A stretch of 64,000 nucleotides of DNA. Source: Heteronotia binoei. Lineage: Eukaryota. How positions within the stretch are numbered: position 1 is the stretch's first letter; every line of letters begins with the position of its first letter. A program made the position numbers and the translations under genes. Below the pieces are notes generated by a model, which made no database searches, had not been told where the DNA came from, and saw only the letters and a list, made by a program, of their open reading frames with translations. The DNA is taken from contig NC_083229.1 in assembly GCF_032191835.1 (NCBI RefSeq), forward strand, positions 992,001-1,056,000, written 5' to 3'. This document shows positions 26,603-62,842 of the stretch, in pieces.

Positions 26603-26803
26603 GATGTTCCAGGGGCCTGGACCAACCGACCTCTGCTGCCTGCGTGGGACTGCCTCTGCTGCCCCAGGAATGTCTATACGGGCCGGCAGGAGGACGGGTG
26701 CTCCTCTCCAGTGCTGTTTCTGTTATTTAATGTTTCTCCATCCATGCAGTCACCCATGGAGCCTTGGGAAGAGGACCCTGGGAGCCAGGGGTGGCAGCTG
26801 CCC

Positions 26804-27478: not shown

Positions 27479-30400
27479 TCAGTGGCAGTTCAGACAATTG
27501 GGGTGGCATCTCTGCCCGTTGACGTTGCACCGGCAGCCTCCACTGGTGTCACCAGGGCCCTGCTCCGAGGGAGGAGAAGAAACACGAGAGTGGGTTAGAG
27601 CAGGCCAAGACACACGCGTTCCACATCCTACCAGAAACTCCGTGACTGTATCTACAGGCCTCCCATTTCCACCACCCCCGACCGCATCCAACAGTCCATT
27701 GTGTGTAGCCAAGCCCCACGCGATACTCGCATCTCTTCCAGCCCCTTGAAAAGGCATTTCTGCAGCCACAGTATCCTCCTGATGTGGTTAGAAGGATGAC
27801 TGGAAAGGCCAGAATGACAGAAAGGGGCAGCTTGCTGTAGACAAACCCAAAGGCAATGACACCAGCGGGGGTCACCTACAGCTCACCACTCAAGGCAGCC
27901 GGCGCATTATGGGAGACCAGCCGCTACCCATGCTGCACAGGGACCCTTCCCTCACACAGGCACTGGGAGCAGGGAGGGCGGGGCTAACCTTTCCTGCCTT
28001 ACAGGCAGCCTGTGCATCAAACCCAGTTCTCCCAGATAAGACAGCTCTGGCTGACCCAAGGCCATTCCAGCAGGTGCAAGTGGAGGAGTGGAGAACCAAA
28101 CCCGGTTCTCCCAGATAAGAGAGCTCTGGCTGACCCAAGGCCATTCCAGCAGGTGCAAGTGGAGGAGTGGGGAATCAAACCCGGTTCTCCCAGATAAGAG
28201 AGCTCTGGCTGACCCAAGACCATTCCAGCAGCTGCAAGTGGAGGAGGGGGGAATCAAACCCGGTTCTCCCAGATAAGAGAGCTCTGGCTGACCCAAGACC
28301 ATTCCAGCAGCTGCAAGTGGAGGAGGGGGGAATCAAATCCGGTTCTCCCAGATAAGAGTCTGCACTCTTCACCACCACACCAAACAGGCGCTCATTCAAC
28401 CACAATGTTCCAAAACCAGTGGACGGATATTTTGTCCTTCCAGAGCATTCAGTTGCTGACCTAAGAGCAGCAGTTCTCTTACAAGGGAATTTCAAAGGGA
28501 GATGAGAAAGAGACGGTCACTGCTGAATTGCAGCTGACAATGAAGCGCAAGACAAGGCATCCGCCTGGACTGAAGCGAGACGTTGGTTTCCTGTCTCACT
28601 ACTAAAGCTGATTTCTCCATGCCTACCATCCCTCTGCTTATCACATCTAATCCAGCCATATCTGCCATTGTCATCCGGCATCTGCAACCCCCCCCCCCTT
28701 CAAGATATAAGGGCAGATGGACTCCCATTCTAGCTGTGTCTGAAGAAGTGAGCGGGGACTCCCAAAAGCTCCTCCCCTGCGGCCACCAACTGTGCGAGTC
28801 TTTCAGGTGCTTCTGGACTGGCTCTTTTCTCCATGTCAGGAGTGTTCACCTGCCGTGGCCTTCCCAGCCTTGAAAGGAGCCTGGCTTGCACAGTGAAGGA
28901 AGCTGACAATTCTCAGGTTCTGCATCTCAGTCTACAAACCTTCATTCAGGCCAGCCCAAGCAGCACAGCCTTTCAGTTCTCCAGAGCTGGGTGCAAAAAA
29001 AAGCAGCTATCGCTAGCCACTGACCCCCCACCCCAAAACTCCTGCTTCTGACTTCCAGCCCCCCACGCCCTGCCTCCCTCAAGCCCTAAAATGTTGTGGT
29101 GAGCTGTAGGTGACCCCCAGTGAGTTGCAGACAGAAGCTTGAAAAGACCCCTCCCCCCCCCAGTAATATTCTGCTTGCTGAAGCATTTTGGAGAACCTGA
29201 CGCCCTACATACTGCGTCCGCTCTTTGGGTCTGTCTTGTATGGGATTTCCCACCATTCTTTCCAAAAGAACCCCCAAGGCAGCTAATGGACACAAATGAA
29301 GCATTGTAATAAAATACTAGAACGAAGCGTTTAGCCAGCCGCTGACAAAGCAGTGCCCCGTTTCAAGTCTCTCTACTGGTCAGCATCTAGGAGGCAGGTG
29401 GGGAGTCCCTGAAGCCTCGGGTTGGGAGCGCGTATGCCAGGATCCTGCCCCTTCCCACACAATCGCCTCTGGGAGCGGCAGGCCAGAACCTGATGCCAAG
29501 ACGGACTGAGCACTTGCAACCGATGCTCCCTCTCTAGCTATGGAGTCTTGTGAGCAAAAAATCTCCTTTGTGAGCTACCAGCATTAAAGCTGTGAGTGAG
29601 CAACTTGGCTCCTGTATCAATGATTGTGCTCGGGCCCTCCTTCCTGAGCGAAGGCAAAAATGTGTGAGCTGGAGGCTTAAAAACTGCGCTAGCTCACACT
29701 AACTCAGCCTAGAGGGAACTCTGTTTGCAACGCTCTCGGGTGCAAGTTTACTTTCGCTCTGCAGAGCCCTGCACCTTTCTTCCTTCTAAGCCTCACCAGA
29801 CATTGGCCGTGCCCTTTCAAGTTTATCTTTCCAATCACAGGGCTGGGCTAGAAACAATGCCATAAAAAAATACTCAACCAGTGAGAACCGGCATTCTGTG
29901 TGTGCACTTTTATTGCGACAGCGACAGAACCCTGAGTGACTCCCCCTGGAGGCTGCCCGCCCCATCCAAGCCCTCCTTCCTGGAGGGAGGGAGAAATTCT
30001 GAGACTCATCAACATTCTTCCTGCCCAGCGGTGGCCGCGAACTCCAGAGACCCCCTGGGGATGATGCCTCACGCCCCAAGCAGCTGCTCTGCACACAGAA
30101 GGCCTTTGGCTCCGTCCCCATGGAAAGCAGCAGGTGATGGGAGGCACCTCCGCCTGACACCCCAGAGAGCCTCACCTGCCCACAGCAAAGGAGACTGAGG
30201 GAGGGGGTCTAACCAGGCAGCTTCAGGTGTAGAGGAGGAAAGGGAGGGGGCAAAGTGGGACCCACTGGCAACACCACCCTTGGCCAAGGCTGGAGAAGAG
30301 GCAGCCGTTGCACCAGGGAGGCAGGGCAGCTTGTGGGATCAGCCTGTTCTTGGTGCTGAAGAGGGGGAGGGGGTACCCGACCTCCCATCCTTTGGGCTCC

Positions 30401-33400
30401 TGCTCCAGCTCATCTCCCCTGCCCCACACACTCACCCCTGGCCCCCAGCGGGGCCCTTTGGTCACCCAGCAGATCTCCGTCTGGCAGACAGGACAGCGGA
30501 GCCAGTCGCAGCCACCCTTCTTCTGGACCACGATGCGGCAGACGGGGCAGTGCATGGCCTCCCCCAATTGCACCAGCGTCTGCGGAGGGGAAGGGGGAGA
30601 GGAACAGTTACGGCCTTGAAGGAAATGGGCCCAGCTGCCGGACCAGGAGGACAACAAGAAGAAACTGCAGGACTGAACTGTTAGGCATACGGGGGGACAA
30701 GGCTTCTGCAGAGGGAAGCCCTGCCTCGCCAACCTCTTGGAGTTCTTTACACAAACATGCACCCACCTCTGGGGGTGGGGAGTGAATAGATGGGACTCTT
30801 CTAGAACTCGGGAGCATCTAACAGGCAGTAGATCCAGGATGGACAAAAGGAAATAGTACTTTGCACAAGTGATTACAATGTGGGATTTGCTGCCAGACGG
30901 TGTGGTGATGGCCACAGGCACAGATGGCTTGAAAAGGAGGTGAGGCGGAGGTCTGCCGGCAGCTGCTAGACCTGGTGGTTGAGGGGAATAGCTCTGCATT
31001 CAGAGGCAGAAAACCTCCACCCCTCAGTGGGAAGACCTGGCCCTCTGTGCACTGTTGCAGGCTCTCCTGATTAACAGTTGGCCACTGGATGCGTGGGGAT
31101 GCTGAACTGGATGGATTGTTGGTTTGATCCACTAGGGCTCTTCCTACATCCCCACCTAGCCTCTAGGGAAGGCCTCCTTTCTCTGCAGCCACTGAACTCC
31201 AGACCAGCTAAGCCACAGCAGGAATGGACACGCCCCAAGCTCCGCAGTCGCTCACCTTGAGCATGTTGCTGGTCTCCCGGGCCTCAGCATCATTCTGGGC
31301 CTGGGACTGCAGCTTGTCCTGGTACTGCTTGCAGTTCATGCCCTCATGAATGGCCTGTGGGCGAGAAAAGGGGCTCTGTTTCTCTGGACACCTTTCCCAG
31401 GAGTGCGCCATTCCATTGGCTAGGGGGTTTTTTGTGCCAAGACCCCAGGAAGAAGAAAAGGCCTGCCAGGGTTCCCTGGGCTTGTGCCCCCTGCTAAGTG
31501 GGGGAGGGCAAGCACCCTCTGCATTCCCAGGCGGCGGCTGTCACAGGCAGGCTGAAGTGGGAGGAGCTGGTGTGGCTGCCTTGATCACTTCAGCTGGTCA
31601 CTGCCTCCCCTGCCCTGGTGGTCCCTTCTCTCCTCGCCTGGCCTAGAGCAACCCCCGAGGGAGGCTGCAGCTCAGTCAAGGAGGTTCGGATGCAGCACCG
31701 CAGGTTCTGTGTTCCCAAGAAACAGACATCTTTGCAATTTCCAGACAGGCTGACATGGAGGACTCAGAAAGGAAGTTGCAGAGCTGGACAAAATGGAGGA
31801 GGAGGAGGAGGAGGGGGCCACCAAAGCAATTACGGGGTTGGAGCAGCTTCCCCAGGAGAAAAAGGACATGGCAGAAGTTTATGGAATGGAGAACACTGAC
31901 AAAGAGAACTTTTTCTCCCCATCGCATCATTCTAAAAGTTGGGGCCACCCAGTGCAACTGATGGGCACAGCAGGTTCAGGGCAGAGAAAAAGAGACATTT
32001 CTTTTCTCAACGAAGTTGCAGCATTCTCTGCCAGTCAGTGTTCTCCTGGCCAGAAGCAGTGACGACTTTAAAAGGGCAGCCAGCCTCTAACCCTCGAGGG
32101 CAAGCCTCGCCCTCCCTGCCAGCTCTTGGACCTTCTGCAGCACAGCTCTTCTGGCCTCCTCCTGCGGGGCTGCTAGAAGGCGATACTAGCAAGGAGGGTC
32201 TTTGCCCTGGCTCACCTTGCACACCAGGCAGTTGAGTGCCCAGCAGATAGGGCAACGGAACTCATTGACATCGTCCTCGTAGATGCACCAGCCCAGGCAG
32301 TCGGCCGTCTGGCAGTGGTAGCTGTTCTGGGCGCGGCTCTCAGCCACCGCCAGCCTCCTCTCCAGGAAACGCTCGTACTCCTCCTGCGACACCAGCTGCA
32401 GAGAGAGGGGGGCTGCTTCAGTGTCCCTCGGGGGGGGGGAAGAGGCAGGCAGCAGCTGGGGGGACAGGACTCCCAAGGCCAAGTAGCCAGCAACTTCTGC
32501 ATTCTGCCAGAGGAGACAGACCACAAAACCCGCCAGGCCAGGAAGACAGATCACACCTCCAGCAGCTTGCCCACCACCCTCCAGGGCACAGCCACTCACC
32601 GCCCGGATCTCTCGGTCCTGTAGGTGGCTGCTGCAGGCGTAGCTGTCATCCCGGAAGGGGCAGGCCACCTGGGGCTCCTCGCTGCAGTTGATCAGCTGCC
32701 GCAGACAGTCCCTGCCCATAAGGACAGAAGAGAAACCATGTTGGAACAGGCCAATGACCCATCCAGCCCAACACTCTGGGTCACACAGTGGCCAAACAAA
32801 ACTAAACCAGGTGCCATCAGGAGGCCCATCAGTGGGGCCAGGACACTAGAAGCGCTCCCACTGTTGCCCGCCCCCCCAAGCACCAAGAATACAGAGCATC
32901 ACTGCCCCAGACAGAGCGTTCCATAAGAACATAAGAGAAGCCATGTTGGATCAGGCCAGTGGCCCATCCAGTTGCACACTCTGTGTCACACAGTGGCCAA
33001 AAAACCCAGGTGCCATCAGGAGGTCCATCAGTGGGGCCAGGACACTAGAAGCCCTCCCACTGTGCCCCCCCCCAAGCACCAAGAAGACAGAGCATCACTG
33101 CCCCAGATATAACAACATGAGAGAAGCCATGTGGGATCAGGCCAATGGCCCATCCAGTCCAACACTCTGGGTCACACAGTGGCCAAAACCCCCCCCCAAA
33201 ACCCCAAGTGCCATCAAGAGGTCCACCAGTGGGGCGAGGACACTAGAAGCCCTCCCACTTTGCCCCCCCAGCACCAAGAAGACAGAGCATCACTGCTCCA
33301 GACATAAGAGAAGCCATGTCGGATCAGGCCAATGGCCCATCCAGTGCAACACTCTGTGTCACACAGTGGCCAAAAAACCCAAGTGCCATCAAGAGGTCCA

Positions 33401-36400
33401 CCAGTGGGGCTAGAAGCCCTCCCACTGTGTCCCCGAAGCACTAGAATAAAGAGCATCACTGCCCCCAGACAAAGAACTCCAACAAGACGCTGTGGCATAT
33501 GCCAGAGAAAGGAAGGGATGAGCAGTCAAGCTTCTGGGTCCCCGCCCTCCGCCCCGTCCCCAGTCCCAGGCGGCAGGAAGGAGCCCCTCACCTGCAGAAG
33601 CTGTGGAGGCACTCCCGCAGCAGCACCCCCTGGCCCGGCTCCACGTCTAAGTAGCAAATGCGGCACTCCGTGGCCTCCTGGGTGGGGACCAGGGCCTCTT
33701 CGTCCAGCTGGCACAGCTGCTGGAAGTTCTGCCACCGCTCCTGCTCCAGGGCCTGTGCAGGGGGAGGAGACAAAGGCAGAGGAGCAACAGGCAGGCCTGA
33801 GGGCAGGGGGCTCAGCCCAAGCCAGGCCACAAGCCTCAGCAGCTTCGCCTGCAAACCTTTCACAACCAGAAGCCACCCGTCTGCAATGAGGGAGAGAGGA
33901 GGACCTGCTGGGATAAGAGACCAGGAAGCTGGAGGGCTGGGGAGAAGGGGGGGATGCCACTAATCACAGGGAACACTGCCCCTAGGAAGAAAGGTTCAGA
34001 CGCTTGGGGCTCTTTAGCTTGGAGAAACATCAACTGCGGGGTGACATGATAGAGGTTTACAAGATAATGCATGGGATGGAGAAGGTAGAGAAAGAAGTAC
34101 TTTCCTCCCTTTCTCACAATACAAGAACTCGTGGGCATTCAACGAAATTGCTGAGCAGTCGGGTTAGAACGGATAAAAGGAAGCACTTCACCCAAAGGGT
34201 GATTGACGTGTGGAATTCACTGCCACAGGAGGTGGCGGCGAATACAAGCATAGCCAGCTTCAAGAGGGGATTAGATAAACATATGGAGCAGAGGTCCATC
34301 AGTGGCTATTAGCCTTGGCGTATTGTTGGAACTCTCTGTCTGGGGCAGTGATGCTCTGTCATCTTGGCGCTTGGGGGGGCAACAGTGGGAGGGCTTCTAG
34401 CCCCACTGGTGGACCTCCTGATGGCATTTGGGGTTTTTGGCCACTTGGTGACACAGTGTTGGATCCAACAGGGCTTCTCTTATGTTCTTATGTGACACAG
34501 AGTCTTGGACTGGAGGGGCCACTGGCCTGATCCAACATGGCTTCTCTTATGTTCTTATGTGATACAGAGAGTTGGACTGGAGGGGCCACTGGCCTGATCT
34601 AACATGGCTTCTCTTATGTTCTTCTGTGACACAGAGTGTTGGACTGGAGGGTCCATTGGCCTGATTCAACATGGCTTCTCTTATGTTCTTATGATACAGA
34701 ATGTTGGACTGGAGGGGCCATTGGCGTGATCCAACAGGGCTTCTCTTATGTTCTTCTGTGACACAGAGTGTTGGACTGGATGGGCCATTGGCCTGATCCA
34801 ACAGGGCTTCTCTTATGTTCTTATGTGACACAGAGTGTTGGACTGGAGGGGCCATTGCCTGATCCAACATGGCTTCTCTTATGTTCTTATGATACAGAAT
34901 GTTGGACTGGAGGGGCCATTGGCCTGATCCAACAGGGCTTCTCTTATGTTCTTCTGTGACACAGAGTGTTGGACTGGAGGGGCCACTGGCCGGATCCAGC
35001 AGGGCTTCTCTTATGTTCTTCTGTGACACAGAGTGTTGGACTGGAGGGGCCACTGGCCGGATCCAGCAGGGCTTCTCTTATGTTCTTCTGTGACACAGAG
35101 TGTTGGACTGGAGGGGCCACTGGCCTGATCCAGCAGGGCTTCTCTTATGTTCTTCTGTGACACAGAGTGTTGGACTGGAGGGGCCACTGGCCTGATCCAG
35201 CAGGGCTTCTCTTATGTTCTTCTGTGACACAGAGTGTTGGACTGGAGGGGCCATTGGCCTGATCCAGCAGGGCTTCTCTTATGTTCTTCTGTGACACAGA
35301 GTGTTGGACTGGAGGGGCCACTGGCCGGATCCAGCAGGGCTTCTCTTATGCTCATCTTGCTTGGGAGGCAGGTCCATAAAGGTGCTGGAGATCCAGCTCC
35401 TGCCCTCTGGGTCCTCCAGGGCAACTCTGCACAAGGAGGCATCCAGCTGCTTGACTCCTCCCCAGCAACCTTCCCGCTCGAAGGGGCCTTGACAGTGCAG
35501 CCGTAGTTGGCCGAGGAGAGGCTTGTTCAGCTGATGGCCAGGACCTGCTGCACGTCTAGCCAGTGTTCCCTCTAGGCTGAGCTAGTGTGAGCCAGCTCAC
35601 TGTTCCTTAGCCTCCAGCTCACGCATTTTTGTCGCAGCTGAGGAAAATGGCCCCAGAGCACACTTATTTATGCAGCAGCCCACAACATTAGTGCCAGGAG
35701 CTCACAAAGCAGAATTTTTGCTCTCCACAGCTCAGAGGGAGCTCTGCTTCCAGCGTCAGGAAGAGGAGGAGCAGCAGCTTCCGCCCGCTCAGGGCAGCCA
35801 CAGGAGGCAAAGGCAACATCACCCTCCTGCCCTGAGGGCTTTTCCCTTCCACCTCCCAAGAACCCACCAGGTCAAGCCCTCTGAGCAGCAGCTGCATGAC
35901 CTGGAAGCTCCATGGCCAGAGGATCTTGGCTCCCTCCTTGTCTTCCCTGCCACACAGCAGGATAAAATGGGGGAGGGAAAGTTACAGGACCCCCAGCTGT
36001 TGGGAGGAATGAAATGGATGAGCCCAAACGACAGCACTGGTCCAACACCAGAGGGGAGTGGGGTGTGCCCGCCGGGACAGGAGGGGTTGCTGTCTGCCCC
36101 ACAAGAGACAGACTTACAGCTGTCTCGCATCTGGGGTATTTGTGGGTTTCCTGCACTGTGCAGGGGGTTGGACTAGATGACCCTGGAGGTACCTTTCAAC
36201 TCTAGGATTCTATGACTTCCCGCTCCATCACTTCAGCTACTCTGGCCATGCGACTCCCCCTCCACGCCCCCTGCAACCTCTGCGGACGGGTGGGCTTGGG
36301 GTGAGTGTGGTGTGCTGGTCAGGGCCAGAGGTTGGGATATCAGGGTCCCAATCCCTGGTGCCTGGGTGACCTGGGGCCAGTCACACCTGCATCTCAGCAG

Positions 36401-39400
36401 AACCTGCCTCACAAGGGGCTGGGGAGGAGGAAATGGAGGAGGGGAGAACCATATGGGGTAGTCGGAGATCAGCCGAGCTTCCGGGATGCATCCAGGGCAC
36501 CTTCCCTTGGTGTTCACGAGCCCTCAAAGTACATTCAAAAGCTGTGAGAAGGTGGGAGAGCCACAGACTGGGGCCACGGATCCCTTCCTCTGGGACTCCA
36601 CTTGTGACATGGGGCGTGGGGTCCAAAGAGGGTGGTTTTGTTTGTTTTAGTTTTGGGCACCACATTTTAAGAAGGCTCTAGACAAGCTGGAACGGGTCCA
36701 GAGGAGGGCAACGAAGATGGGGAGGGGTCTGGAGACCAAGTCCTATGAGGGAAGGTTGAAGGAGCTGGGCATGTTTAGCCTGGAGAGGAGACGGCTGAGG
36801 GGTGATAGGATCACCATCTTCGAGTACTAAGGGCTGTCATATAGAGGAGGGTGTGGAATTGTTTTCTGTGACCCAGAACTAGTGGGCTGAAATTAAATCA
36901 AAAGAGTTTCTGTTTAAATATAAGGAAGAACGTCCTGACAGAGCGATTCCTCAGTGGAACAGGCTTCCTCCTTGGGAGGTGGTGGGCTCTCCTTCCTTGG
37001 AGGTTTTTCAATAGAGGCTAGATGGCCATCTGACAGCAATGAGGATCCTCTAAATTTAGGGGGAGGTATTTGTGAATTTCCTGCATTGTGCAGGGGGTTG
37101 GACTAGATGATCCTGGGGGTCCCTTCCAGCTCTATGATTCTAATTGCACTACTGCAGATGCGCAGTAGAGTCCAGCAAGTGCCTTCCATTTACAACTTCA
37201 TAGTTCAGGTTCTGAATATGCATTTTGGCCTTAGTTTGTTGAGTGAAAGGGAACAGAAAGGAACTCGGGGGGGGGTGTTGAAATTGACAATGCTTTTTTT
37301 AATTGACAAGCAGCTGCAAAGCCCCCTTTTCCCTATTGTTGAGCACTTGGGGGATTCTCAGCCACTGTGAAAAATGGGAATGTGTCACGTGATCTCCTAA
37401 AGGGGGCCTTTTCGATCGCTTCCCCCCACTGGTGGAACAACTGCCAGGGGAAGTGCAGGCCTTGTGGGATCTTGGCCAGTTCTGCAGGGCCTGCAAAACC
37501 ATCTTCTTCCAGCTGGCCTTTAGTTAACAGAGTTACATACTTGATGTCAGCTAGAGATCAGTCAAATCGCCCTTTGTCAAGAAACCTCGACTAAAGACCA
37601 ACATCACTACTCTCCCCCCACCAAAAAATAAATCCTAGGCTTTCAACAAGGTACCTCACCAAAGAGTCCCAAGGAAACCTAGCAGTTGGGACTAGGGCAC
37701 AGGGCCTCCCCACATGGATTGAAAACTGGTTAAAGAACAGGAAAGCAAAACAGAGGCATAAATGGACAATTCTTGCAGCAGGGGAGGGGGGGGCACAGAC
37801 ACAGACAAAAAGAAATGCTTATTGACTCAAGGATAGTTAAACAGTGGAATTCACACTTGTAGATTTAAAAGGTTAGATTTCTAGCAAGGAGGTCCATCAA
37901 TGACTACATGACCCGGCTAGCAAAGGGAACTTGCACCTGCAGAGGCAGTGCCCCTCGGAAACCCCCTGCAGCACCAGAGGAGGGACTTGGCCTCTGTGCC
38001 CCGTTTGTGAGCCTTCCAGCTTAACTGCTGTGCAGCAGGAAGCTGCAGCCGATACGTGCGCAGGGTAGGGCTGATCCAGCAGAGTCCTTCTTGTGTTAGG
38101 CCTTCATGCAAGAAGCACAAATTTCTGGTCCTGTCCCTGAAGCCGTGTGGGCAGGGCCAAGAGGGAGGCTGGTGTTTAGGGGGAGGGGTTTGTGAGTTTC
38201 CTGCGTTGTGCAGGGGGTTGGACTAGATGGCCCTGGAGGTCCCTTCCCACACTAGGATTCTACGGTGGTGCACTCAAGAATGAGCACACAGAAAGCAGGC
38301 AATGCAGCCAGACTGGTTAGAGCTGCCCTCGGGCAGACAGAAAAGGTCTTGGTTTGGCCTCCCAAAGCATCAGTCCCTCCTCCTCCTCATCCTCCCCCCA
38401 GTGAGAGCAGCTGGGCATCAGCACATGACACCCTGTCCTTACCAGCCTCCCCCCACCCCACAAACTGAAGCAGCCCCGATACCAAGCTGGCCTTTCTGGT
38501 CCACAGGAATCATTTAATAGAACAAGGTGCTCATTCTCCAAGAGTCTTCAAATGTACAAACACTTTACAGAAATAAAACCCGCCTGAAAAGGGCACTTGA
38601 AACTTCAACGCCAGACAAATCACAGTGTTCAGTGCAAGAAGGCGGCCAGTGGCCTCTCCCAGCATGCATCGCTCCACGGCACTCTCCCCCGTGGCTCACA
38701 GTGACACGAATGGCCCGAGGAGGCCAAGGCCTGCAGACTGAGACATGGCTGCGCTGCCAGAGCCCCAAAGGCACAGGCCCATCCCCGGGCAAGGGAAAGG
38801 GTCGGGGAGACTGCAGGGCAAAGGGGCCTCCTTCCCTCGCAGCTTCAGTGGCAAGTTTAAAAGGCAGAAGCTGGCTTGAAGTCAGCCCAAGAGGGGGGGG
38901 GGCTGCCCGCGCAGCCTCCAGCACTAGCGATGGCCCCCGCCAAGTGCTCTGGCATCTCCTCTCTCCGCAGCTATGGGATGCAGTGCCACGGCCAGGCAGC
39001 GCCTGCTTCTCAGAGGGCCAGAGGAAAGGAACCTGCTTCAAGGGTCACCTGAGCACAGGCAGCTTGTCAAGGTACCCCAGAATGCAGCAGGCTTGTGGTG
39101 GATCCTTCACAGAGGAACTGGGAGAAGGCAGAACTGGGGGGCCAGATCCCCTCCCCGCAAAAGCCTGGCTCAGGCCTGCAAGGTCCATCCCAGGGAGAGG
39201 TTCTTCCGCCCAAGAGCCAAACCAGACCCTTGAATGTGCAAGCTGTGGCCCCCTTTCTCAAGGAGGCTTTGGGTTTGCAGGACTGAGCCGGAAGGCAGAG
39301 GCCACAGACCATAATGCCCAGTCCTGAACTAGGGATGGGGTGCAGCAAGGCTCCTGCACCGTTAGGAGTGTCACTGCCACACAAGCCACTTGTGGCACCA

Positions 39401-42400
39401 CAGAGAAACCCTGAGCCCCTCTGCTCCCTCTTCTGCAGCACCCCACGGAACTGCCCCCTCCCCCCAAGGCTCAGTGGGCAACAGAAACATTGAACGGGGG
39501 ATTTTCAGAAGCAAAACAAGGAACCGGAGAGCCCGCCCATGGTCCAGCCTGCACTTGGCTCCTCAGGGCAGCCGCTGCTGCAACCGTCTCCCAGGAGGTC
39601 AAGCAACGCAGGCCCAGCTGCAAAGCAGGAGCTCTGCTGCTCAAGGCTCCGGGTGCCGGCTAGGAGAACTCCGAGGAAAGGTGGATGAAGTCATCCAGGG
39701 AGCCGGGGCCGCCGGCACAGGGCAGAGCAGAACTGTCTTCTCTCCTTCCCTTTTCCTGCCGCAAGAGAAAAAAGAAAGAAGAGAAGAGAGTCACGGGGTG
39801 TCGGGGCTCACCTGAAGAGGTAAAGGCCCAGAAGGAAATATGACTTTCCCCCTGTTTTTCCACAGTGGAGGGAGGAAAATGAATTTTTGGAATGCATCAA
39901 AAAAAAAAGAAGCCAACATTCATTTAGATTTCTTTTAAAGCAAGATTTTACTAAGAATGCGCAGCAGTGACATCTACTAAGGAATCTACCTCATTAGAGC
40001 AATTTTATGTATGCTGTGGGCACATATGCATTTTCAAGTATGTATTTATTGCTTACACGATTTGTCTATGGTAGGCTCTCTGGATAATACACTATCACGT
40101 AACACACCCAACACTTCCAAGTTGTAAAGCTGAACATCCAAAGGAGCGATGAGCTCTGCCACTTGCATGCTTAAGGCCTCTCTTCCCCCTACTTTTCAGA
40201 AGGCAACACACCAAGACACACGCATTACGGCAGCACAGAATACAACGCTTGGCAGTTCTCCCTTGCTTGTAGACAACAGCCTCTGCCCTTTGAAATCCCA
40301 TCAATGTGTCAAATATTAGTTATCAATGATGCACTTTATGTTGTTACAGCAAGAACAGTATTGCATGCTCGTTTTGGCAGCACATACATGATAGAGAAGA
40401 TTAGCCTGGCCCCTGCGCAAGGATGACACAAATTTGCAATGTTCCAATTCCAATTTTACTCCCCAAAAAACCCATTTGGAAAACGATGCAGGCCAAATCA
40501 TAGAGTTAGAAGTGACCTACAAGGTCATCTAGTCCAACCCCCTGCACGATGCAGGAAACTCATCAACCCCTCCCCCTAAATTCACAGGATCCTCATTGCT
40601 GTCAGATGGCCATCTAGCCTCTGTTTCAAAACCTCCAAGGAAGGAGAGCCCACCACCTCCCAAGGAGGAAGCCTGTTCCACTGAGGAATCGCTCTAAGTG
40701 TCAGGAATCCTAGAGTTGGAAGGGACCTCCAGGGTCATCTAGTCCAACCCCCTGCACAATGCAGGAAACTCAGCAACCCCTCCCCCTAAATTCACAGGAT
40801 CTTCATCGCTGTTAGATGGCCATCTAGCCTCCGTTTAAAAACCTCCAAGGAAGGAGAGCCCACCACCTCCCAAGGAGGAAGCCTGTTCCACTGAAGAACC
40901 GCTCTAACGGTCAGGAAGTTCTTCCTAATGTTGAACTGGAAACTCTTTTGATTTAATTTCAACCCATTGGTTCTGGTCGCACCTTCTGGGGCCACAGAAA
41001 ACAATTCCACAATTTTGTCTTGCTAAGAAAGTATGGCTGAAATCTGTTTCCGCAACGTGCTCCTTCAAACTGTCTAAACCGTTATCCTTCCCATGGCTTC
41101 AAAATTTGCAGAAACGTCAGGCATTCTCAGCTCAGCCTAGGCCTTCTTCACCAGGCCAGGGCCCCTTTCACCCCTCAGCATCTGGTTTCTGCCACGGCCA
41201 CCCCAGCAACACTCCAAGCCACACCAGCATCTCCTTCCTCAAGCATCTCACAAGCAATCAGCCCCAGGGGCCCAGTCACCCCACAAGCTGTCAGGTGGGA
41301 ACTCCCAGCCATGCTCAGCTACATGCCTGGGGTCCCTTCCCTTCCCTTGACCTGTGCCAGGCACTCCCACGCCACTGCCTCACATGGCCAACCACCGCCT
41401 GCCAGGAAGGGGGAGGAGGAGGAAGCCAGGAGTAACGTCACTTCTTGCATTTTCCCTCTCACTTCCCCACCACTAATTCGCAAACCAGTCTTAACATCCA
41501 CACAGAAAAAAGAACCCCACAGGCAGGCAAGGATCAGGTCACAAACACAACGAAAGACAGACGGTGCCAACGGAGGAGGGTCCAGCCAGGCAGCCCCTGG
41601 GCAGAGGCAGAAGCAGCCACCTTACCTGCTGGTACCGCACAATCCCCTCCTTCTCCTGCTGCATCCGCCACAGCTCCATTTCATCGGGTCTGTAGCTGCC
41701 AGGAACCACATAGCTGGCAGGCCGGTCGGTGCTGCACATTTCACAGCCGGGGCGGGTGGGCTTGTTGATGAAGGTGCAGGTCGGACAGGACCAGCCGGCC
41801 TGTAAGGTAAGTGGAGGAAGAGGCCCATGGGATCCCCCCAACTGGCTCCACACAGCCGTGGCCCAGAAGGCACAACGTGGGAAAGGGAGCCCTCCAGGGA
41901 AGAGGGGCAGCCCTGTGGGAGGGAGGCAAGAGAGTCTACCTGGACAGGGGAAGGGGGGGCAACAGCTGCAGCCGGAAGAGCTGGAGGCTGGTTGGGAAGG
42001 AGGTCGGTCAGCTGCAGCACACTCAACCTCTCCTCGATGTCATTCTTCTTACTTCCATGAGACGCACCTGCTGGCCAGAAATGCATCAGGGAGAAGCGTT
42101 ACCTACTTGCAGCCAACAGCCTGCTGATCCAGACAAGCCCTGGCCTCGGGGAATGAAGCCTCGGTTCACCCACCTGTCTTTGGCAGAGAGTTGGACGAAG
42201 GCCGCCCAGCGTTGGAGCCATCCGAGAGCGACGAAGGGGCCGGCTGCAGCACCACCCAGTCTTTGTCCTCTTTGTAGCGCTGCTCCGAGAGACTGGCCAC
42301 TTTTGCAGTCAGCAGGTAGAGAAAGGCCGTGTCTCCATCCTTGCGAATCCCGTAGGAGCCCACTGTCCGGTCGTCGACACAGAGGCACTGACCAATAATC

Positions 42401-45400
42401 CAGCGCTGGACACTGGGGTGGAACCCATAATCCTGAAAGACCTTGGAAAGGACAGAAAACAGAGGCAAGGTTAGGACTAGAAAAGCCGCAGTTGCTCGTC
42501 TCTCTTTTGCAGCACTCAGAAGATCTTGGGACTCTTCTCTGACATCTTTCTTGAGGCTGAAAGGCAGAAGAACAGGTTTCTCTGGGGTCCCCTTTCTGCT
42601 TCCCAGTCCTTGGACTCCATCCCCACACTACCTTCTGCCTGAGAGCCGCGATTGTGGTGTGCGTCTGCACCGGGATGGTGATGTTGGCTGAGCACATAGC
42701 ATCCTCCACGCCCACCTTCATGCTACAAGAAAGAACAGCCGTGAGCAAGATGGCACGCTGCAAGATGACCCTGGCCCAAATCACTACTGCCAAAGCCAAG
42801 CTTCCCCTCCCCCGAGCTCCATGCTCCACACACACCTGATCTCACTCGCGGGGTAGCAGGACTCCTTTGGAAGGATGCGCAGAGCCGCTTGTTGCTGAGC
42901 CAGTGCTGTGGCACATCGAACAGCCTCTTCCTGGTTCCCAAGTTCAATAGCCGTGGAAAGCTGGAAAGCCAGGTCTTCTAAGGAGATACGGACACAAAGG
43001 CAGGCAAAAGTCAGCCACCCTTCCACCCCATCTTGGCTGGACAGGCTGCCCCCTCCACCTCGTGGGGTGATTTCAGTGAGCCACACACCCTGTTCCCTTC
43101 TCAGCTTGAAGAAATGGCTGCATTCTACAGGCTTTCCTCCACTATGCATTGGTGCACTCCCCAAGCCGATTTCTAAGAGCTCCAAAGAGGCTGCTTGCTT
43201 TTATAGTAACACATTCTTCTTACTCGCTCCCGTTGCCACTAGCCAACAATCTCTCAAGGAGCCCACCTGTTTCAAGCACCAGTTCCCTAACCCAAAGCGG
43301 GCAGAAGGAAGTTCCCAGCCAGCCCACTGATGCCTCCTTCCACAAGGCCTGGGCGGACTAGGTAGCCAAGGAAGCAAGTCTGATCAGCTGAGAAAGCAAA
43401 AAAACCCAAGCCTCACTTTTTTTCTAGCAGAAAGACCGGGCAAATTTCCCAGGCTGCACAATTTAGATCTTTCTTAGTAAGTTTCCTCAGTATTCATTCT
43501 CCACCGCAGCTGGCACGCAACGGCTCCAGAGGGAGCCACAGGCCGCCCTCCACCTGCACCTTTCCCAGTCAAGCTGGCCACCAACCTTTCCTGGCCAGTT
43601 CCGCAGGCAGAGAGCCCTCAGGCTCTGACACAGGCAGAGAGTTCGTAGCAGCTGAAAGATTATGAGGAGACCGTCCTGTCGCCACGTGGGGGCCCTCCGC
43701 AGCTGGGGAGAGACAAGGAGAACAATCTCAGAGGACAGAAGCCCTCGGCTCCTCAGACCAGCTCAAGAAGGGGGCAGGCCTGAAATCCTAACACTGGTGA
43801 GAAACCAAAGCAGAATACAAAATGCTTATTGCGGGCAAAGAACGAATCTACTGGTTCGTGTTCCCTAGGAAGTGCTCGTTCCAGCTAAAACCAGCTGCTG
43901 CATCCAGCAGAGGCTACTGGCAGCCTGGCACACCACCCTGAATCACAGTACTGATCTTTGATGGGGGACACTGTGCATGAGAAATGAGAGGGACGGCAGT
44001 TCACAAATGGCTGCAGGATCTGAAAGCAGCTATTCCTCTCAAGGACAGGATGGGCAATGCCTGGGGAGTGCATCCACAGGCAACTCCTGGGTGTACACCG
44101 GGCACTACCAGCAAATCTCTGTACATGTTTCACAGGGCCAGAAACCTGACACAGCCCCACACATCAGATTGGTGCAGCCTGTGTACTGCTCGCCAAAATC
44201 ATTTGGAACAGTACAACATAGTCTCTGGCTTGTGCGATCTGAAGCCCCTCATCACAATGCAGAGCTGTACTGCAACGCCTCCTCCGACTAATGCTACCGG
44301 GCTGTGGTGGATCCGGCCCACGAACCCACACTTGTGGTCCCAGTGGAGCAACATCTTGTCACATGGAGGATGCACGCCCCTTGCCTCCTGGCCACAGAAA
44401 TGTGCTTTGCATGAGCCAGCCAGCTCTTCTAGCCAGAGTAGGGACCACAAATGAGCCCCTCCCTGAGACTTGCCAGGACCTTCCTGGGCAGCAGCTGACC
44501 TTTCTGGACCTCCCAAAGGGAGCTGCTGACGACTGCCCACCACTTCTGGGCCTCGTGCTCATCCTCAAAATGAAAGACAATGGGGTCATCCGGGCGAGCC
44601 AAGACTTTCAGCTCATGGCATGTGGGCGTCTTCACTTCATAGGAAATCTCTCTGAGGCTGTACTCCACCAGGCTCTAGAGGCAAAATATAAGAACATCAG
44701 AAGAGCCCTGCTGGATCAGAACGATGATCCATCTAGTCCAGCATCCTGCCTCACACAGCAGCCAGCCAGTTCCCCCGGAGGGCCAACAATTGGGCAGAGA
44801 GGCCGAGGCCTTCCCCTGAGAAGAGCATCAGAAGAGCCCTGCTGGAGCAGAACAGGGAGGGTCCATCTAGTCCAGCCTCCTGTCTCACACAGGGGCCAGC
44901 CAGTTCCTCTGGAGGGTCAACAATTGGGCAGAGAGGCTGAGGCCTTCCCCTGAGAAGAACATCAGAAGAGCCCTGCTGGGTCAGACCAGGGAGGGTCCAT
45001 CTAGTCCAGCCTCCTGTCTCACACAGAGACCAACCAGTTCCTCTGGAGGGCCAACAACAGGGCAGAGAGGCTGAGGCCTTCCCCTGAGAAGAACATCAGA
45101 AGAGCCCTGCTGGGTCAGACCAGGGAGGGTCCATCTTGTCCAGCTTCCTGCCTCACACAGTGGCCAACCAGTTCCTCTGGAGGGCCAAGAAAAGGGCAGA
45201 GAGGCCGAGGCCTTCCCCTGAGAAGAACATCAGAAGAGCCCTGCTGGGTCAGACCAGGGAGAGACCATCTAGTCCAGCCTCCTGTCTCACACAGTGGCCA
45301 ACCAGTTCCTCTGGAGGGCCAGCAACAGGCAGAGAGGCTGAGGCTTTCCCCTGATGTTGCCTCCTGTCATTCAGAGGTTAACAGTCTCCAAATGTGGAGG

Positions 45401-47481
45401 CTTCACTTGACCATCATGGCTAGTAACCATTGACAGACTTATCCTCCCTGAATCTCTCTCATCCCCTTTTAAAGTTCTTTATTCCAGAGACCAATTGCTG
45501 AGCAGACAGGTTAAAACGGATAAAAGGAAGTACTTCTTCACCCATAGGGTGATTAACATGTGGAATTCACTGCCACAGGAGGTGGTGGCGGCCACAAGCA
45601 TAGCCACCTTCAAGAGGGGTTTAGATAAAAATATGGAGCACAGGTCCATCAGTGGCTATTAGCCACAGTGTGTGTGTATATATAAAATTTTTTGCCACTG
45701 TGTGACACAGAGTGTTGGACTGGATGGGCCATTGGCCTGATCCAACATGGCTTCTCTTATGTTCTTGCATCCTCAGGCAACAAATTCCACAGTTTAATCC
45801 TCCGAAGTGAGCGGAAGAAAGTCCTTCGGTGGGCATGCAAGGTCAAGTCACTCTTACCCACCTGGACCGCAGTCCAACCCCCTCCCCAGCAAACTACCCA
45901 AAAGCTACACCAAAGGTGGCCAAACTGCGGCTCAGGAGTCTGACTCTTTCACACATATTGTGCAGCACTTGAAGCCCCCCCACCCCCTTTAATGCCTGGC
46001 TTGGAGAAGAAGAAGAAGATATTGGATTTATATCCCGCCCTCCACTCTGAAGAGTCTCAGAGCGGCTCACAATCTCCTTTCCCTTCCTCCCCCCCAACAG
46101 ACACCCTGTGAGGTAGATGAAGATACTGGATTTATATCCCGCCCTCCACTCCAAAGAGTCTCAAAGCGGCTCACAATCTCCTTTCCCTTCCTCCCCCCCA
46201 ACAGACACCCTGTGAGGTAGATGAAGATATTGGATTTATATCCCGCCCTCCACTCCAAAGAGTCTCAGAGCGGCTCACAATCTCCTTTACCTTCCTCCCC
46301 CACAACAGACACCCTATGAGGTAGATGAAGATATTGGATTTATATCCCGCCCTCCACTCCAAAGAGTCTCAGAGCAGCTCACAATCTCCTTTCCCTTCCT
46401 CCCCCGCAACAGACACCCTGTGAGGTAGATGAAGATATTGGATTTATATCCCGCCCTCCACTCCAAAGAGTCTCAGAGCGGCTCACAATCTCCTTTACCT
46501 TCCTCCCCCACAACAGACACCCTGTGAGGTGGGTGAGGCTGGAGAGGGCTCTCACAGCAGCTGCCCTTTCAAGGACAACCTCTGCCAGAGCTATGGCTGA
46601 CCCAAGGCCATTCCAGCAGCTGCAAGTGGAGTAGTGGGGAATCAAACCCGGTTCTCCCAGATAAGAGAGCTCTGGCTGACCCAAGGCCATTCCAGCAGGT
46701 GCATGTGGAGGAGTGGGGAATCAAACCCGGTTCTCCCAGATAAGAGTCTACACACTTAACCACTACATCAAACTGGCTCTCTTTACCTTCTCTCCCCCCC
46801 ACAGCTTACAATCTCCTTTACCTTCCTCCCCCACAACAGACACCCTGTGAGGTAGGTGGGGCTGAGAGAGCTCTCCTAGAAGCTGCCCTTTCAAGAACAG
46901 CTCTGCCAGAGTTATGGCTGACCCAAGGCCGTTCCAGCAGCTGCAAGTGGAGGAGTGGGGAATCAAACCCGGTTCTCCCAATTAAAAGTTTTCGAACCTA
47001 AAAAGAAGACTGTACATTTATACCCCACCCTTCTCTCTGAATCAGAGACTCAGAGCGGCTCACAAGACACCCTGTGAGGCGGGTGGGGCTGAGAGAGCTC
47101 TGACAGAAGCTGCCCTTTCAAGGACAGCTCTGCCAGAGTTATGGCTGACCCAAGGCCATCCCAGCAGGTGCAAGCGGAGGAGCGGGGGATCGAACCCGGT
47201 TCTCTCGGGCAGGAGGGCCGGAGAAGGCACGGCGGCTGCTGGCAGAAGAAGCGCTGCCTCCTCACCGGCTCTGGGCCCGAGTCCTGGCCGCCCCTCAGGC
47301 CGAGGCGGAAGCGGTCGTGGCCGGGCGCGGCGCTGAGCTGGAGGAGGAGGAGGCGCCGCCCGGTGCGGCCCAGGAGCGGCAGCGGGGAGGGCCGAGGCAC
47401 CCAGGCCCGCGCCGACGCCAGCAGCTGCTGCGGCTGCCCCGCCGAGGAGGACGAGGAGGAGCCCCCCGCCGCAGCCGCCAT
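27479..47481 (-). CDS. SHARPIN: SHARPIN orthologue with C-terminal HOIL-1L/RBCK1-like RBR E3 module (PH-LTM-UBL-NZF-RING1-IBR-RING2), 14 exons, ~679 aa
   Basis: Minus-strand exons 47481-47266, 44674-44500, 43651-43586, 42977-42836, 42722-42632, 42441-42174, 42070-41940, 41799-41626, 33752-33592, 32711-32600, 32395-32216, 31354-31256, 30579-30436, 27559-27479. All GT-AG, phases compatible, 2040 nt. PH-like N-terminus, LTM ([15 protein letters not shown]), UBL ([12 protein letters not shown]), NZF ([20 protein letters not shown]), RING1 (CRIC..CLHSFCRDC), IBR, RING2 ([14 protein letters not shown]), end NCLNCH*. Occupies the SHARPIN position between CYC1 and MAF1. Confidence 0.92.
28010..28385 (-). 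repeat. Squam3-like SINE with the 79-bp head/B-box segment repeated 5 times
   Basis: aaacccggttctccc-like motif at 28019, 28098, 28177, 28256 and 28335. Confidence 0.88.
32755..33480 (-). mobile_element. Cluster of CR1 3' tails (four partial copies) in SHARPIN intron 9
   Basis: Repeated cataagaacataagagaagccatgttggatcaggcc..cactgccccaga. Confidence 0.85.
33965..35350 (+). mobile_element. CR1 3' fragment followed by ~13 tandem copies of its 67-bp terminus (34470-35350)
   Basis: ORF 34004-34312 [29 protein letters not shown]; same array unit as 5056-6580. Confidence 0.92.
36660..37135 (+). mobile_element. CR1 3' fragment (family of the CYC1 array)
   Basis: Degenerate [24 protein letters not shown] end and ggggttggactagatga tail. 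Confidence 0.82.
39660..39755 (-). CDS. Candidate alternative terminal exon for a short SHARPIN-type isoform ([31 protein letters not shown])
   Basis: On -, a ~29-nt pure pyrimidine tract (39790-39762) preceded by GTGAC and followed by GCGGCAG|GAA. Phase 0, like the NZF exon donor. Stop at 39662-39660, then a repeat-free 1.1-kb stretch ending in TGTA motifs and ATTAAA (38518-38513). Confidence 0.5.
   Translation of the reverse strand, partial: EKGRREDSSALPCAGGPGSLDDFIHLSSEFS
40365..40456 (+). pseudogene. Degenerate U6 snRNA copy
   Basis: tgctcgttttggcagcacata..gagaagattagcctggcccctgcgcaaggatgacac matches U6 with substitutions and an internal deletion. No obvious PSE/TATA. Confidence 0.85.
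40500..41010 (-). mobile_element. CR1 3' fragment with duplicated tail
   Basis: Minus ORF 40792-41010 [18 protein letters not shown]..; two tail copies. Confidence 0.85.
44690..45360 (-). repeat. Tandem array (5 x ~134 bp) of a third CR1-type 3' terminus
   Basis: aagagccctgctgg at 44701, 44832, 44966, 45100 and 45234. Confidence 0.88.
45480..45770 (+). mobile_element. CR1 3' fragment
   Basis: ..[17 protein letters not shown] and ttctcttatgttctt tail. Confidence 0.82.
46004..47205 (-). repeat. Cluster of Squam3-like SINEs including 5 tandem 104-bp tail units
   Basis: gaagatattgg-like motif at 46015, 46119, 46223, 46327 and 46431; further partial SINEs to 47205. Confidence 0.88.
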
Positions 47482-62600: not shown

Positions 62601-62789
62601 ACAGATATTTGAGTTGTCCTAAGAAGCATTTCTCTTATTCCAGAAAAGAAGATAATTCACATGAGCTTTCCCCTCCAGTACTCCCCACAAACTTGCATTT
62701 TTTCCTGTCAAAATACCAGGGAAAGTGGTATTTATCCCCCTAATTTTGGTCTGGGGGGAGTCTGGGCTTTCCCACCTCTACTGCTGACC

Positions 62790-62790
<1 letters not shown>

Positions 62791-62842
<52 letters not shown>
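62791..62842 (+). repeat. (CT)n microsatellite
   Basis: About 25 CT units directly upstream of the MAF1 exon acceptor. Confidence 0.95.

Follow-up and report, generated by a model that had tools for sequence, protein, structure and literature searches.

The SHARPIN gene of Heteronotia binoei very probably contains a genuine and ancient alternative terminal exon, located on the minus strand from position 39755 to approximately 38490 of the 64-kb window (the whole stretch of DNA that was analysed). Our results support the view that a short adaptor and a long enzyme both come from this single gene. A first-pass annotation had proposed that use of the exon leads to a short PH-LTM-UBL-NZF form and that skipping it leads to a SHARPIN protein with a RING1-IBR-RING2 (RBR) module. 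This proposal is supported by the tails of orthologous proteins and mRNA contigs, by conservation and by RNA words confined to the exon.

The SHARPIN gene and its predicted products

The exon map, built by tblastn together with a splice-aware model, places SHARPIN at 27479..47481 on the minus strand, with 14 coding exons in the long form (PH-LTM-UBL-NZF-RBR) in addition to the alternative terminal exon. Pfam searches with the exon ORFs detected Sharpin_PH (1.7e-21), LTM (1.3e-18) and Zn_ribbon_RanBP (3.3e-08), along with matches to RING and IBR that were all below the curated cut-offs of Pfam. Among PDB entries, the gene matched the Sharpin structures 4emo and 5y3t. The last exons of CYC1 are found at 25985-26616 of the window on the plus strand, convergent with SHARPIN, and CYC1 also adjoins the gene in the turtle and swan loci. 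A PH-less RBCK1 paralogue is present elsewhere in the gecko genome, on contig C2. The Sharpin-type PH domain, the synteny with CYC1 and the separate RBCK1 identify the gene as an orthologue of SHARPIN rather than of RBCK1/HOIL-1.

The upstream exon common to both forms is the NZF exon (41626..41799, minus strand), which encodes the NZF core and a HOIL-1L-type tail helix and ends in ...VRYQQ. On direct reading, its donor is CAG/GTAAGG in phase 0, with the last exon base at 41626 and the GT at 41625-41624. Residues 371-432 of the Gekko orthologue align to the HOIL-1L NZF structures 3b08 and 8im5. The NZF tail helix has been said to be unique to HOIL-1L (PMC10511788). Contrary to this statement, our comparison shows that a predicted 'NZF tail' helix also occurs in non-mammalian SHARPIN.

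When the alternative last exon is skipped, splicing would reach the distal acceptor of the RING1 exon (33592..33752, minus strand, first base 33752). The spliced models gave 468 aa for the short form and 696 aa for the long form, each about 17 aa more than the lengths given in the first-pass annotation (about 452 and 679 aa). In the 696-aa model, the RING1-IBR-RING2 exons are in frame with the N-terminal part and contain no stops. The model with the junction 41626->33752 is 100% identical to the RefSeq 'sharpin' of Heteronotia binoei and, among the proteins returned by our searches, the RefSeq product for this species is the long form only. By its domain content the long isoform would be a candidate HOIL-1-like RBR E3 ligase.

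Elements and conservation of the alternative terminal exon

The features claimed for the start of the exon were all found on direct reading of the minus strand. A branch-point-like GTGAC, putative in function, lies at 39794-39790; the corresponding motif is ATGAC in Gekko and snakes, and a CTGAC lies upstream in turtle and swan. It is followed by a pure pyrimidine tract (39763..39790, minus strand), which is 28 nt long rather than the approximately 29 nt stated earlier, and which is the sole pure run of at least 25 nt on the minus strand of the window. Gecko, snakes, swan and elephant shark share an identical tract core, CTTCTCTTCTTTCTT. GCGGCAG then extends up to the exon start, with the AG of the proximal 3' splice site at 39757-39756 and the first exon base at 39755. 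The position orthologous to this AG is the mRNA junction in swan-like contigs, and the corresponding protein junction, YQQ/EKGRRE, occurs in at least 20 species. The first approximately 22 nt of the exon (GAAAAGGGAAGGAGAGAAG) are purine-rich and nearly invariant.

The coding part (39660..39755, minus strand) consists of 31 codons in phase 0 and a TAG stop (39662-39660). The 31-aa tail that it encodes begins with EKGRRED, continues the NZF exon in frame, and is variable among species in its middle. An AlphaFold2 model of the Gekko short isoform, based on a 21-sequence alignment, had a mean pLDDT of 56 with values below 50 in the tail, which limits structural inference to the statement that the tail is probably disordered. 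When the tail of one protein (P0018) was used alone in a search for homologous proteins, the query itself was the only match. A 78-aa stop-to-stop ORF query matched one unspliced snake contig, a result that is informative on conservation and not on splicing.

The 3' untranslated region (UTR) of the short isoform would span 38490..39659 (minus strand, approximately 1.15 kb), with cleavage predicted about 15-25 nt after ATTAAA. As had been claimed, this region is free of repeats and carries TGTA motifs (near 38570-38555) and ATTAAA (38518-38513), both by direct reading of the minus strand. The whole 1.3-kb segment contains no internal repeats and is present as a single copy in the 2.63-Gb genome; SINE-like copies lie on either side, at 38175-38260 and 40496-40915. 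The ATTAAA is the sole AATAAA/ATTAAA-type hexamer within the UTR. Such polyadenylation signal (PAS) hexamers number 37 per strand in the 64 kb, approximately one per 1.7 kb, and the motif alone is therefore at chance level. It is located, with the TGTA motifs, in a conserved distal block (38490..38649, minus strand) and is followed, after the predicted cleavage site, by a putative GT/G-rich downstream element (38430..38489, minus strand). Identity of this element to Gekko kuhli is 0.80, compared with 0.45 further downstream.

Identity to Gekko kuhli was 0.89 in the acceptor and 0.91 in both the ORF and the final 160 nt of the UTR; for comparison, the proximal UTR gave 0.60-0.62 and introns gave 0.40-0.62. 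Between the gecko and snake loci, only the NZF exon (87%), the acceptor together with the ORF (85%) and the RING1 exon (84%) align; identity of the ORF to Crotalus is 0.85. On these alignments, the acceptor, ORF and poly(A) block display exon-grade conservation inside diverged introns. At the protein level, dN/dS of the tail is 0.17-0.47, with 0.20-0.24 for the deepest pairs, and a 12-residue motif is kept from swan to gecko through synonymous changes (GAT/GAC/GAG and CTT/CTC/CTG). The length of the ORF and its stop are maintained at 30-31 codons in gecko, snake, swan, turtle and a lungfish-like mRNA.

A search across species, proposed earlier for squamates, turtles and birds, found the exon in all three groups and beyond. 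In Gekko, Crotalus, a second snake, turtle, swan, gar and elephant shark, it occupies the interval between the NZF exon and the RING1 exon, and conservation of the alternative 3' splice site extends from gecko to elephant shark. Judged from this distribution, the alternative terminal exon is about as old as the jawed vertebrates.

Short-form transcripts and rival explanations

Proteins that carry the tail after the NZF exon follow the consensus ...YQQ/EKGRRE..SL[DE][DE]F[IV]HLSSEF[SC]. In the RefSeq sharpin of Gekko japonicus (XP_015275509.1, 463 aa) the tail comes directly after YQQ, and it is also present in proteins of Gekko kuhli, Crotalus adamanteus (KAK9402799.1), Alligator, Xenopus tropicalis and Rhinoderma (X2), in isoform X2 of Gallus gallus sharpin (XP_040552088.1), in several teleost proteins and in a lungfish-like mRNA from Logan. 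Contigs L003 and L004, both lungfish-like, each represent a complete mRNA of the short form. At the swan locus, two independent swan-like RNA contigs align in 9 exons; in both, the NZF exon is spliced to the orthologous acceptor, the 3' UTR then runs on unspliced for at least 1.5 kb, and the RING1 exon is never reached. The short sharpins in RefSeq, GenBank and UniProt share with the predicted gecko form the same exon, the junction after YQQ, the 31-aa tail family and the PH-LTM-UBL-NZF architecture. They differ in being unpublished automatic gene models of other species, the gecko being listed with the long form only. Our literature search found no paper on non-mammalian SHARPIN isoforms. What is already known is thus the short form in databases for other species, and we did not find the switch, its age or its splice elements described in papers.

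In Heteronotia binoei itself, RNA coverage is confined to the alternative exon segment. Three RNA libraries (X1, X2 and X3) contain 72%, 38% and 33% of 141 sampled words from 38490-39790, and these values fall to 33%, 16% and 14% of 341 words once 1.9 kb of flank is added; words of the flank alone are at approximately 0-5%, so that coverage stops at the flanks of the segment. These counts come from small libraries of one study and have a coarse resolution that is blind to strand, junction and exact ends.

The exon might instead be the constitutive last exon of SHARPIN, with the downstream RBR exons forming a separate gene under its own promoter and no switch between them. GenBank does split the loci of Gekko kuhli and Crotalus adamanteus into a short sharpin and a downstream RING-containing gene, and the full-length matches found only in Logan (transcript-assembled) were, among the best 120, all short forms. 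However, the RING1 exon starts in phase 0 right after ...YQQ, and the models give it no separate start codon. Annotations of dozens of birds, squamates, turtles, amphibians, bony fishes and sharks contain joined proteins, about 700 aa long, that run from PH to RBR, and in Heteronotia binoei the joined model and the RefSeq protein are the same. We consider two separate genes most unlikely, and the split gene models look like annotation artefacts caused by the alternative last exon.

A second alternative accepts the exon but takes it as a non-productive decoy or poison exon whose use would mainly reduce how much long ligase is made, with a short protein and a tail that are functionless in themselves. 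The predicted disorder of the tail and its variable middle would fit this, as would the fact that conservation is strongest at RNA-level elements, namely the pyrimidine tract, the purine-rich start and the poly(A) block. A functionless tail is nevertheless difficult to reconcile with a dN/dS well below 1, with a motif retained through synonymous changes, and with an ORF length and stop position conserved in the sauropsids compared and in the lungfish-like mRNA. Full-length short mRNAs have been assembled in many runs. Because the exon is terminal and has a predicted poly(A) site, its mRNA would by the usual rule not be a substrate of nonsense-mediated decay (NMD). We regard the decoy as very unlikely. 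Finally, neither a 31-codon frame following an AG nor a lone ATTAAA is remarkable where PAS hexamers are this frequent, and the segment could have been a chance ORF and PAS, or an unrelated transcript or enhancer overlapping the intron. This is effectively refuted by the recurrence of this peptide after the NZF exon in numerous species, in mRNAs as well as proteins, by the single-copy segment with its exon-restricted RNA coverage, and by the conserved pyrimidine core and exon start.

A putative switch between adaptor and ligase

With the segment taken as an alternative terminal exon of SHARPIN, the spliceosome would, after the NZF exon donor at 41626, either take the proximal acceptor at 39756/39755 or skip to 33752. 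On the proximal route, cleavage and polyadenylation after ATTAAA would end the transcript, and the mRNA would direct synthesis of the 468-aa non-catalytic PH-LTM-UBL-NZF protein with its 31-aa tail. On skipping, the product would be the 696-aa protein, whose RING1-IBR-RING2 ligase module is HOIL-1-like. Proximal splicing with polyadenylation may compete with distal splicing, kinetically or under regulation, to set the choice. Their conservation suggests that the near-invariant pyrimidine element and the purine-rich exon start are control elements; the former is rich in UCUU and CUCUCU, which makes PTB-type binding a plausible guess. The two products may have different roles in LUBAC, and the isoform ratio could, we speculate, tune LUBAC composition.

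The secreted and membrane forms of immunoglobulin mu are a classical example of a switch between alternative last exons by intronic polyadenylation. The arrangement in SHARPIN resembles it in opposing a proximal terminal exon with a poly(A) site to distal splicing, and in giving products with a common N-terminal part and differing C-terminal modules. Unlike the classical switches, it would strip a ubiquitin-ligase subunit of its entire catalytic RBR module, and conservation of its 3' splice-site elements spans the jawed vertebrates. Another parallel, within LUBAC, is RBCK2, described in PMC4064560 (citing Tatematsu et al. 2008 JBC) as an RBR-less splice variant of mammalian RBCK1/HOIL-1 that reportedly inhibits or tethers the long form. 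Both cases concern paralogous LUBAC subunit genes with a long RBR ligase and a short form without RING-IBR, but RBCK2 derives from a different gene. The NZF-to-RING1 intron of the gecko RBCK1 paralogue (C2, 9.452-9.483 Mb) contained no recognisable homologue of the tail exon, and there is thus no support for a switch older than the duplication of SHARPIN and RBCK1.

The short form had also been called mammal-like. Human SHARPIN (Q9H0F6) is a 387-aa PH-LTM-UBL-NZF protein, and the mammalian protein ends approximately 10 residues after the NZF core. To our knowledge, the mammalian gene has no RBR exons; it adjoins CYC1, as in the gecko. The likeness therefore holds for the non-catalytic PH-LTM-UBL-NZF architecture without RBR and for the CYC1 neighbour. 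It does not extend to the C terminus, as the gecko form keeps a HOIL-1L-type NZF tail helix and the conserved 31-aa tail. We know of neither this helix nor an EKGRRED...DDFIHL tail in human or other mammalian SHARPIN, which would accordingly not simply be the gecko-type short isoform made constitutive.

A broader scenario is possible, although we hold it to be rather doubtful. SHARPIN of the ancestral jawed vertebrate would have been dual-output, with a switch about 450 million years old, regulated through the pyrimidine element (possibly PTB-type) and the purine-rich start, supplying LUBAC with an adaptor and a second HOIL-1-type ligase. The conserved acidic-aromatic motif of the tail, [DE][DE]F-x-x-[LIV], LIR-like in sarcopterygians, would serve in docking. 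In the mammalian lineage the RBR exons would later have disappeared, along with the NZF tail helix and the tail, so that a short form truncated still further became fixed as 'SHARPIN'.

Nearly all of LUBAC biology has been worked out in mammals, in which SHARPIN acts solely as a non-catalytic subunit. The SHARPIN orthologue of the gecko, and of birds, reptiles, amphibians, bony fishes and sharks, is predicted to encode a HOIL-1-like RBR ligase as well as a short adaptor, and one deeply conserved alternative last exon would decide between them. For annotation, this exon marks a problem, as the short form is missing for the gecko among the proteins returned and some genomes split the locus into two genes at this point. 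The gene offers a testable model for the origin of the mammalian adaptor, and our results suggest that the adaptor-to-ligase ratio may be a regulated variable in most vertebrates.

The SHARPIN gene of Heteronotia binoei and its candidate last exon

The candidate exon (39755 to ~38490, minus strand) lies in a gene whose successive exon ORFs matched Sharpin_PH, LTM, a RanBP-type zinc finger, RING and IBR in Pfam, and which also matched the Sharpin PH structure (PDB 4emo). Splice-aware gene models guided by orthologues gave a long form of 14 exons and 696 aa, 100% identical to the RefSeq entry 'sharpin [Heteronotia binoei]', and a short form of 9 exons and 468 aa in which the candidate exon is the last. 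The first-pass annotation had estimated 679 and ~452 aa for these isoforms, each about 17 aa too short. A NAGNAG-like pair is present at the acceptor of the exon preceding the NZF exon (42067-42070, minus strand); guided by different orthologues, the long model used 42070 and the short model 42067, a difference of one residue.

The last exons of CYC1 (cytochrome c1) were found at 25985-26616 on the plus strand, convergent with SHARPIN, and CYC1 adjoins SHARPIN in the turtle and swan loci too. This placement in gecko, turtle and swan agrees with the CYC1-SHARPIN arrangement of mammals. A separate paralogue, RBCK1/HOIL-1, is located on another contig of the gecko genome (G000:C2:9452649-9482884, plus strand), with UBL, NZF, RING1, IBR and RING2 exons at 44-63% identity; a search of this locus for a PH match found none. 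Taking into account the CYC1 neighbour and the separate, PH-less paralogue, the host gene is the SHARPIN orthologue, which in this gecko carries an RBR module.

The NZF exon ends in ...TAC CAG CAG (last base 41626, phase 0) and is followed by a GTAAGG donor, and the RING1 exon, with a good acceptor before it, starts at 33752. In the intron between them, direct reading of the minus strand located all the elements that the first-pass annotation had listed: a branch-like GTGAC (39794-39790), a pure pyrimidine run (39790-39763), GCGGCAG with the acceptor AG at 39757-39756, an open frame of 31 codons beginning at 39755 and closed by TAG at 39662-39660, TGTA motifs near 38570-38555, and ATTAAA at 38518-38513. 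The observation was confirmed, with the single adjustment that the pyrimidine tract, pure as described, measures 28 nt and not ~29 nt. ATTAAA is the only PAS-type hexamer in the presumed UTR of the candidate exon; it carries little weight by itself because such hexamers are common (37 per strand in the window). No other pure pyrimidine run on the minus strand of the entire window reaches 25 nt. Long pure pyrimidine runs number only three in the window, one of them a CT-rich run of 55 nt at 62788-62842 (plus strand), where the minus-strand ORF reads RERERE....

A repeat search of the 1.3-kb candidate segment found no internal repeats, and the segment occurs only once in the 2.63-Gb genome searched. 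SINE-like copies are present on both sides and bracket this single-copy exon. The upstream one, at 40496-40915, is a 210-nt unit in tandem duplicate (92% identical), and that at 38175-38260, just downstream of the predicted poly(A) site, is an 86-nt inverted copy (93%). The same NZF-to-RING1 intron harbours a tandem array of ~67-nt units (~34490-35360, minus strand), which translate as repeated EKPCWIRP...NIREALLD in ORF lists; the array gave laddered BLAST matches to dispersed copies in Gekko kuhli and was probably derived from a dispersed repeat.

RNA evidence and short forms in other vertebrates

RNA from this gecko was examined as sampled sequence words in three small libraries of one study (X1, X2 and X3). 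Words of 38490-39790 (n=141) were found at shares of 72%, 38% and 33%, respectively. When 1.9 kb of flanking intron was added (37190-40390, 341 words), the shares dropped to 33%, 16% and 14%, against 30%, 16% and 14% expected if words of the candidate segment alone were present; this leaves about 0-5% of the flank words in the libraries. As word coverage is restricted to the segment, the segment behaves as an exon of mature RNA, and not as pre-mRNA or DNA background.

Orthologues were collected by whole-library searches with the PH exon and by a full-length search. Among the matches returned, twenty-odd carry a homologous tail and end shortly past the NZF exon, including RefSeq sharpin of Gekko japonicus (XP_015275509.1, 463 aa; tail at the NZF-exon junction), proteins of Gekko kuhli, Crotalus adamanteus, Alligator and Xenopus tropicalis, isoform X2 of both chicken sharpin and Rhinoderma, a lungfish-like mRNA (tail GKGRREDG...QDDFVYISDNGIY) and teleosts (EKGRREELR...NLDQDY). 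For the lungfish-like short protein there are two complete mRNA contigs, which come from two runs. A further two runs gave two swan-like mRNA contigs, each of which aligns with the genomic locus of swan in nine exons; in both, the NZF exon is spliced to the orthologous acceptor and continues into at least 1.5 kb of colinear 3' UTR, never reaching the RING1 exon. They are direct spliced-mRNA evidence for the NZF-to-candidate-exon junction in a sauropsid.

The chicken X2 isoform reads ...YQQGRRED..., without the EK that opens the tail elsewhere, which points to an acceptor placed 6 nt deeper or to a change at this spot. The X1 and X3 isoforms of chicken have an unrelated repetitive tail after YQQ. 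GenBank annotates the SHARPIN locus of Gekko kuhli and that of Crotalus adamanteus as two gene models each, with the break exactly at the candidate exon: a short sharpin and, downstream of it, a gene containing a RING. The internal poly(A) site has probably misled the annotation here.

Conservation of the acceptor, the tail and the poly(A) region

In all the loci examined (Gekko kuhli, Crotalus, a second snake, turtle, swan, spotted gar and elephant shark), the candidate exon is found in the interval from the NZF exon to the RING1 exon. Intron sequence cannot be aligned at all between gecko and snake; the only three pieces that do align are the NZF exon (87%), the candidate acceptor with its ORF (85%) and the RING1 exon (84%). 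Against Gekko kuhli, identity was 0.89 for the NZF exon, 0.40-0.62 for flanking intron, 0.89 for the candidate acceptor, 0.91 for the tail ORF and 0.60-0.62 for the proximal UTR, rising to 0.91 in the final 160 nt of the UTR, ATTAAA included, and then 0.80 in the downstream GT/G-rich element and 0.45 further downstream.

Gecko, snakes and swan share the intronic pyrimidine tract and the opening ~22 bases of the exon with little or no change, and the 15-nt core of the tract, CTTCTCTTCTTTCTT, is identical in elephant shark as well. This 3' splice-site region is under unusually strong constraint. Judging from the shared position and the core identical as far as elephant shark, the exon is about as old as jawed vertebrates. 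The dN/dS of the 31 tail codons was 0.17-0.47 (0.20-0.24 in the deepest pairs), and that of the NZF exon 0.06-0.09. A 12-residue block of the tail is retained via synonymous changes, which speaks for selection acting on the peptide in addition to the RNA elements.

Proposed switch mechanism, products and relation to known isoforms

From one donor the gene offers two competing acceptors; behind the proximal one come a stop codon and a poly(A) block that is conserved. Short and long products both exist across vertebrates. The candidate is an alternative last exon of the skipped-terminal-exon type. The proposal that its use yields a short SHARPIN and its skipping the SHARPIN-RBR ligase is supported by the orthologue tails, the spliced swan-like mRNAs, conservation and the exon-restricted RNA words, and we consider it very probable that this is a genuine, used last exon. 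The proximal acceptor, transcribed 6 kb sooner, would win by default, and the short:long ratio would be set by the non-canonical ATTAAA together with factors acting on the pyrimidine element and the purine-rich exon start. Since UCUU and CUCUCU are frequent in the conserved element, one may reasonably guess that PTB-type proteins bind it.

The short form retains PH, LTM, UBL and NZF, including the HOIL-1L-type tail helix. In the Gekko orthologue, residues 371-432 align to the HOIL-1L NZF structures 3b08 and 8im5, with a predicted helix at 414-434. The NZF exon of non-mammalian SHARPIN (41626-41799, minus strand) encodes the YxP linker and the 'NZF tail' helix; according to PMC10511788, this tail is known from HOIL-1L alone. 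Past this point the long form carries RING1-IBR-RING2 in place of the 31-aa tail. The tail is probably disordered (predicted pLDDT <50). KGRRE is invariant in it, and its C-terminal acidic-aromatic motif looks LIR-like, [DE][DE]F-x-x-[LIV], in tetrapods and lungfish; one might speculate that the tail is a docking motif.

The short form is already present in RefSeq, GenBank and UniProt as automatic gene models of other species, and in that sense of database presence the exon is not new; for H. binoei, the long product alone was listed among the proteins returned by our search. No publication on SHARPIN isoforms outside mammals or on a SHARPIN-RBR turned up in full-text literature searches. The nearest published analogue is RBCK2, a splice variant of the paralogue RBCK1 that also lacks the RBR, according to a passage of PMC4064560 citing Tatematsu et al. 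2008. No recognisable homologue of the tail exon was found in the NZF-to-RING1 intron of gecko RBCK1. Human SHARPIN ends ~10 residues past the NZF core, and the term 'mammal-like', applied earlier to the short form, is for that reason only approximately right. It is plausible that mammals fixed the short form. The isoform itself already stands in the databases, but its biology is apparently unpublished and is of real relevance to the evolution of LUBAC.
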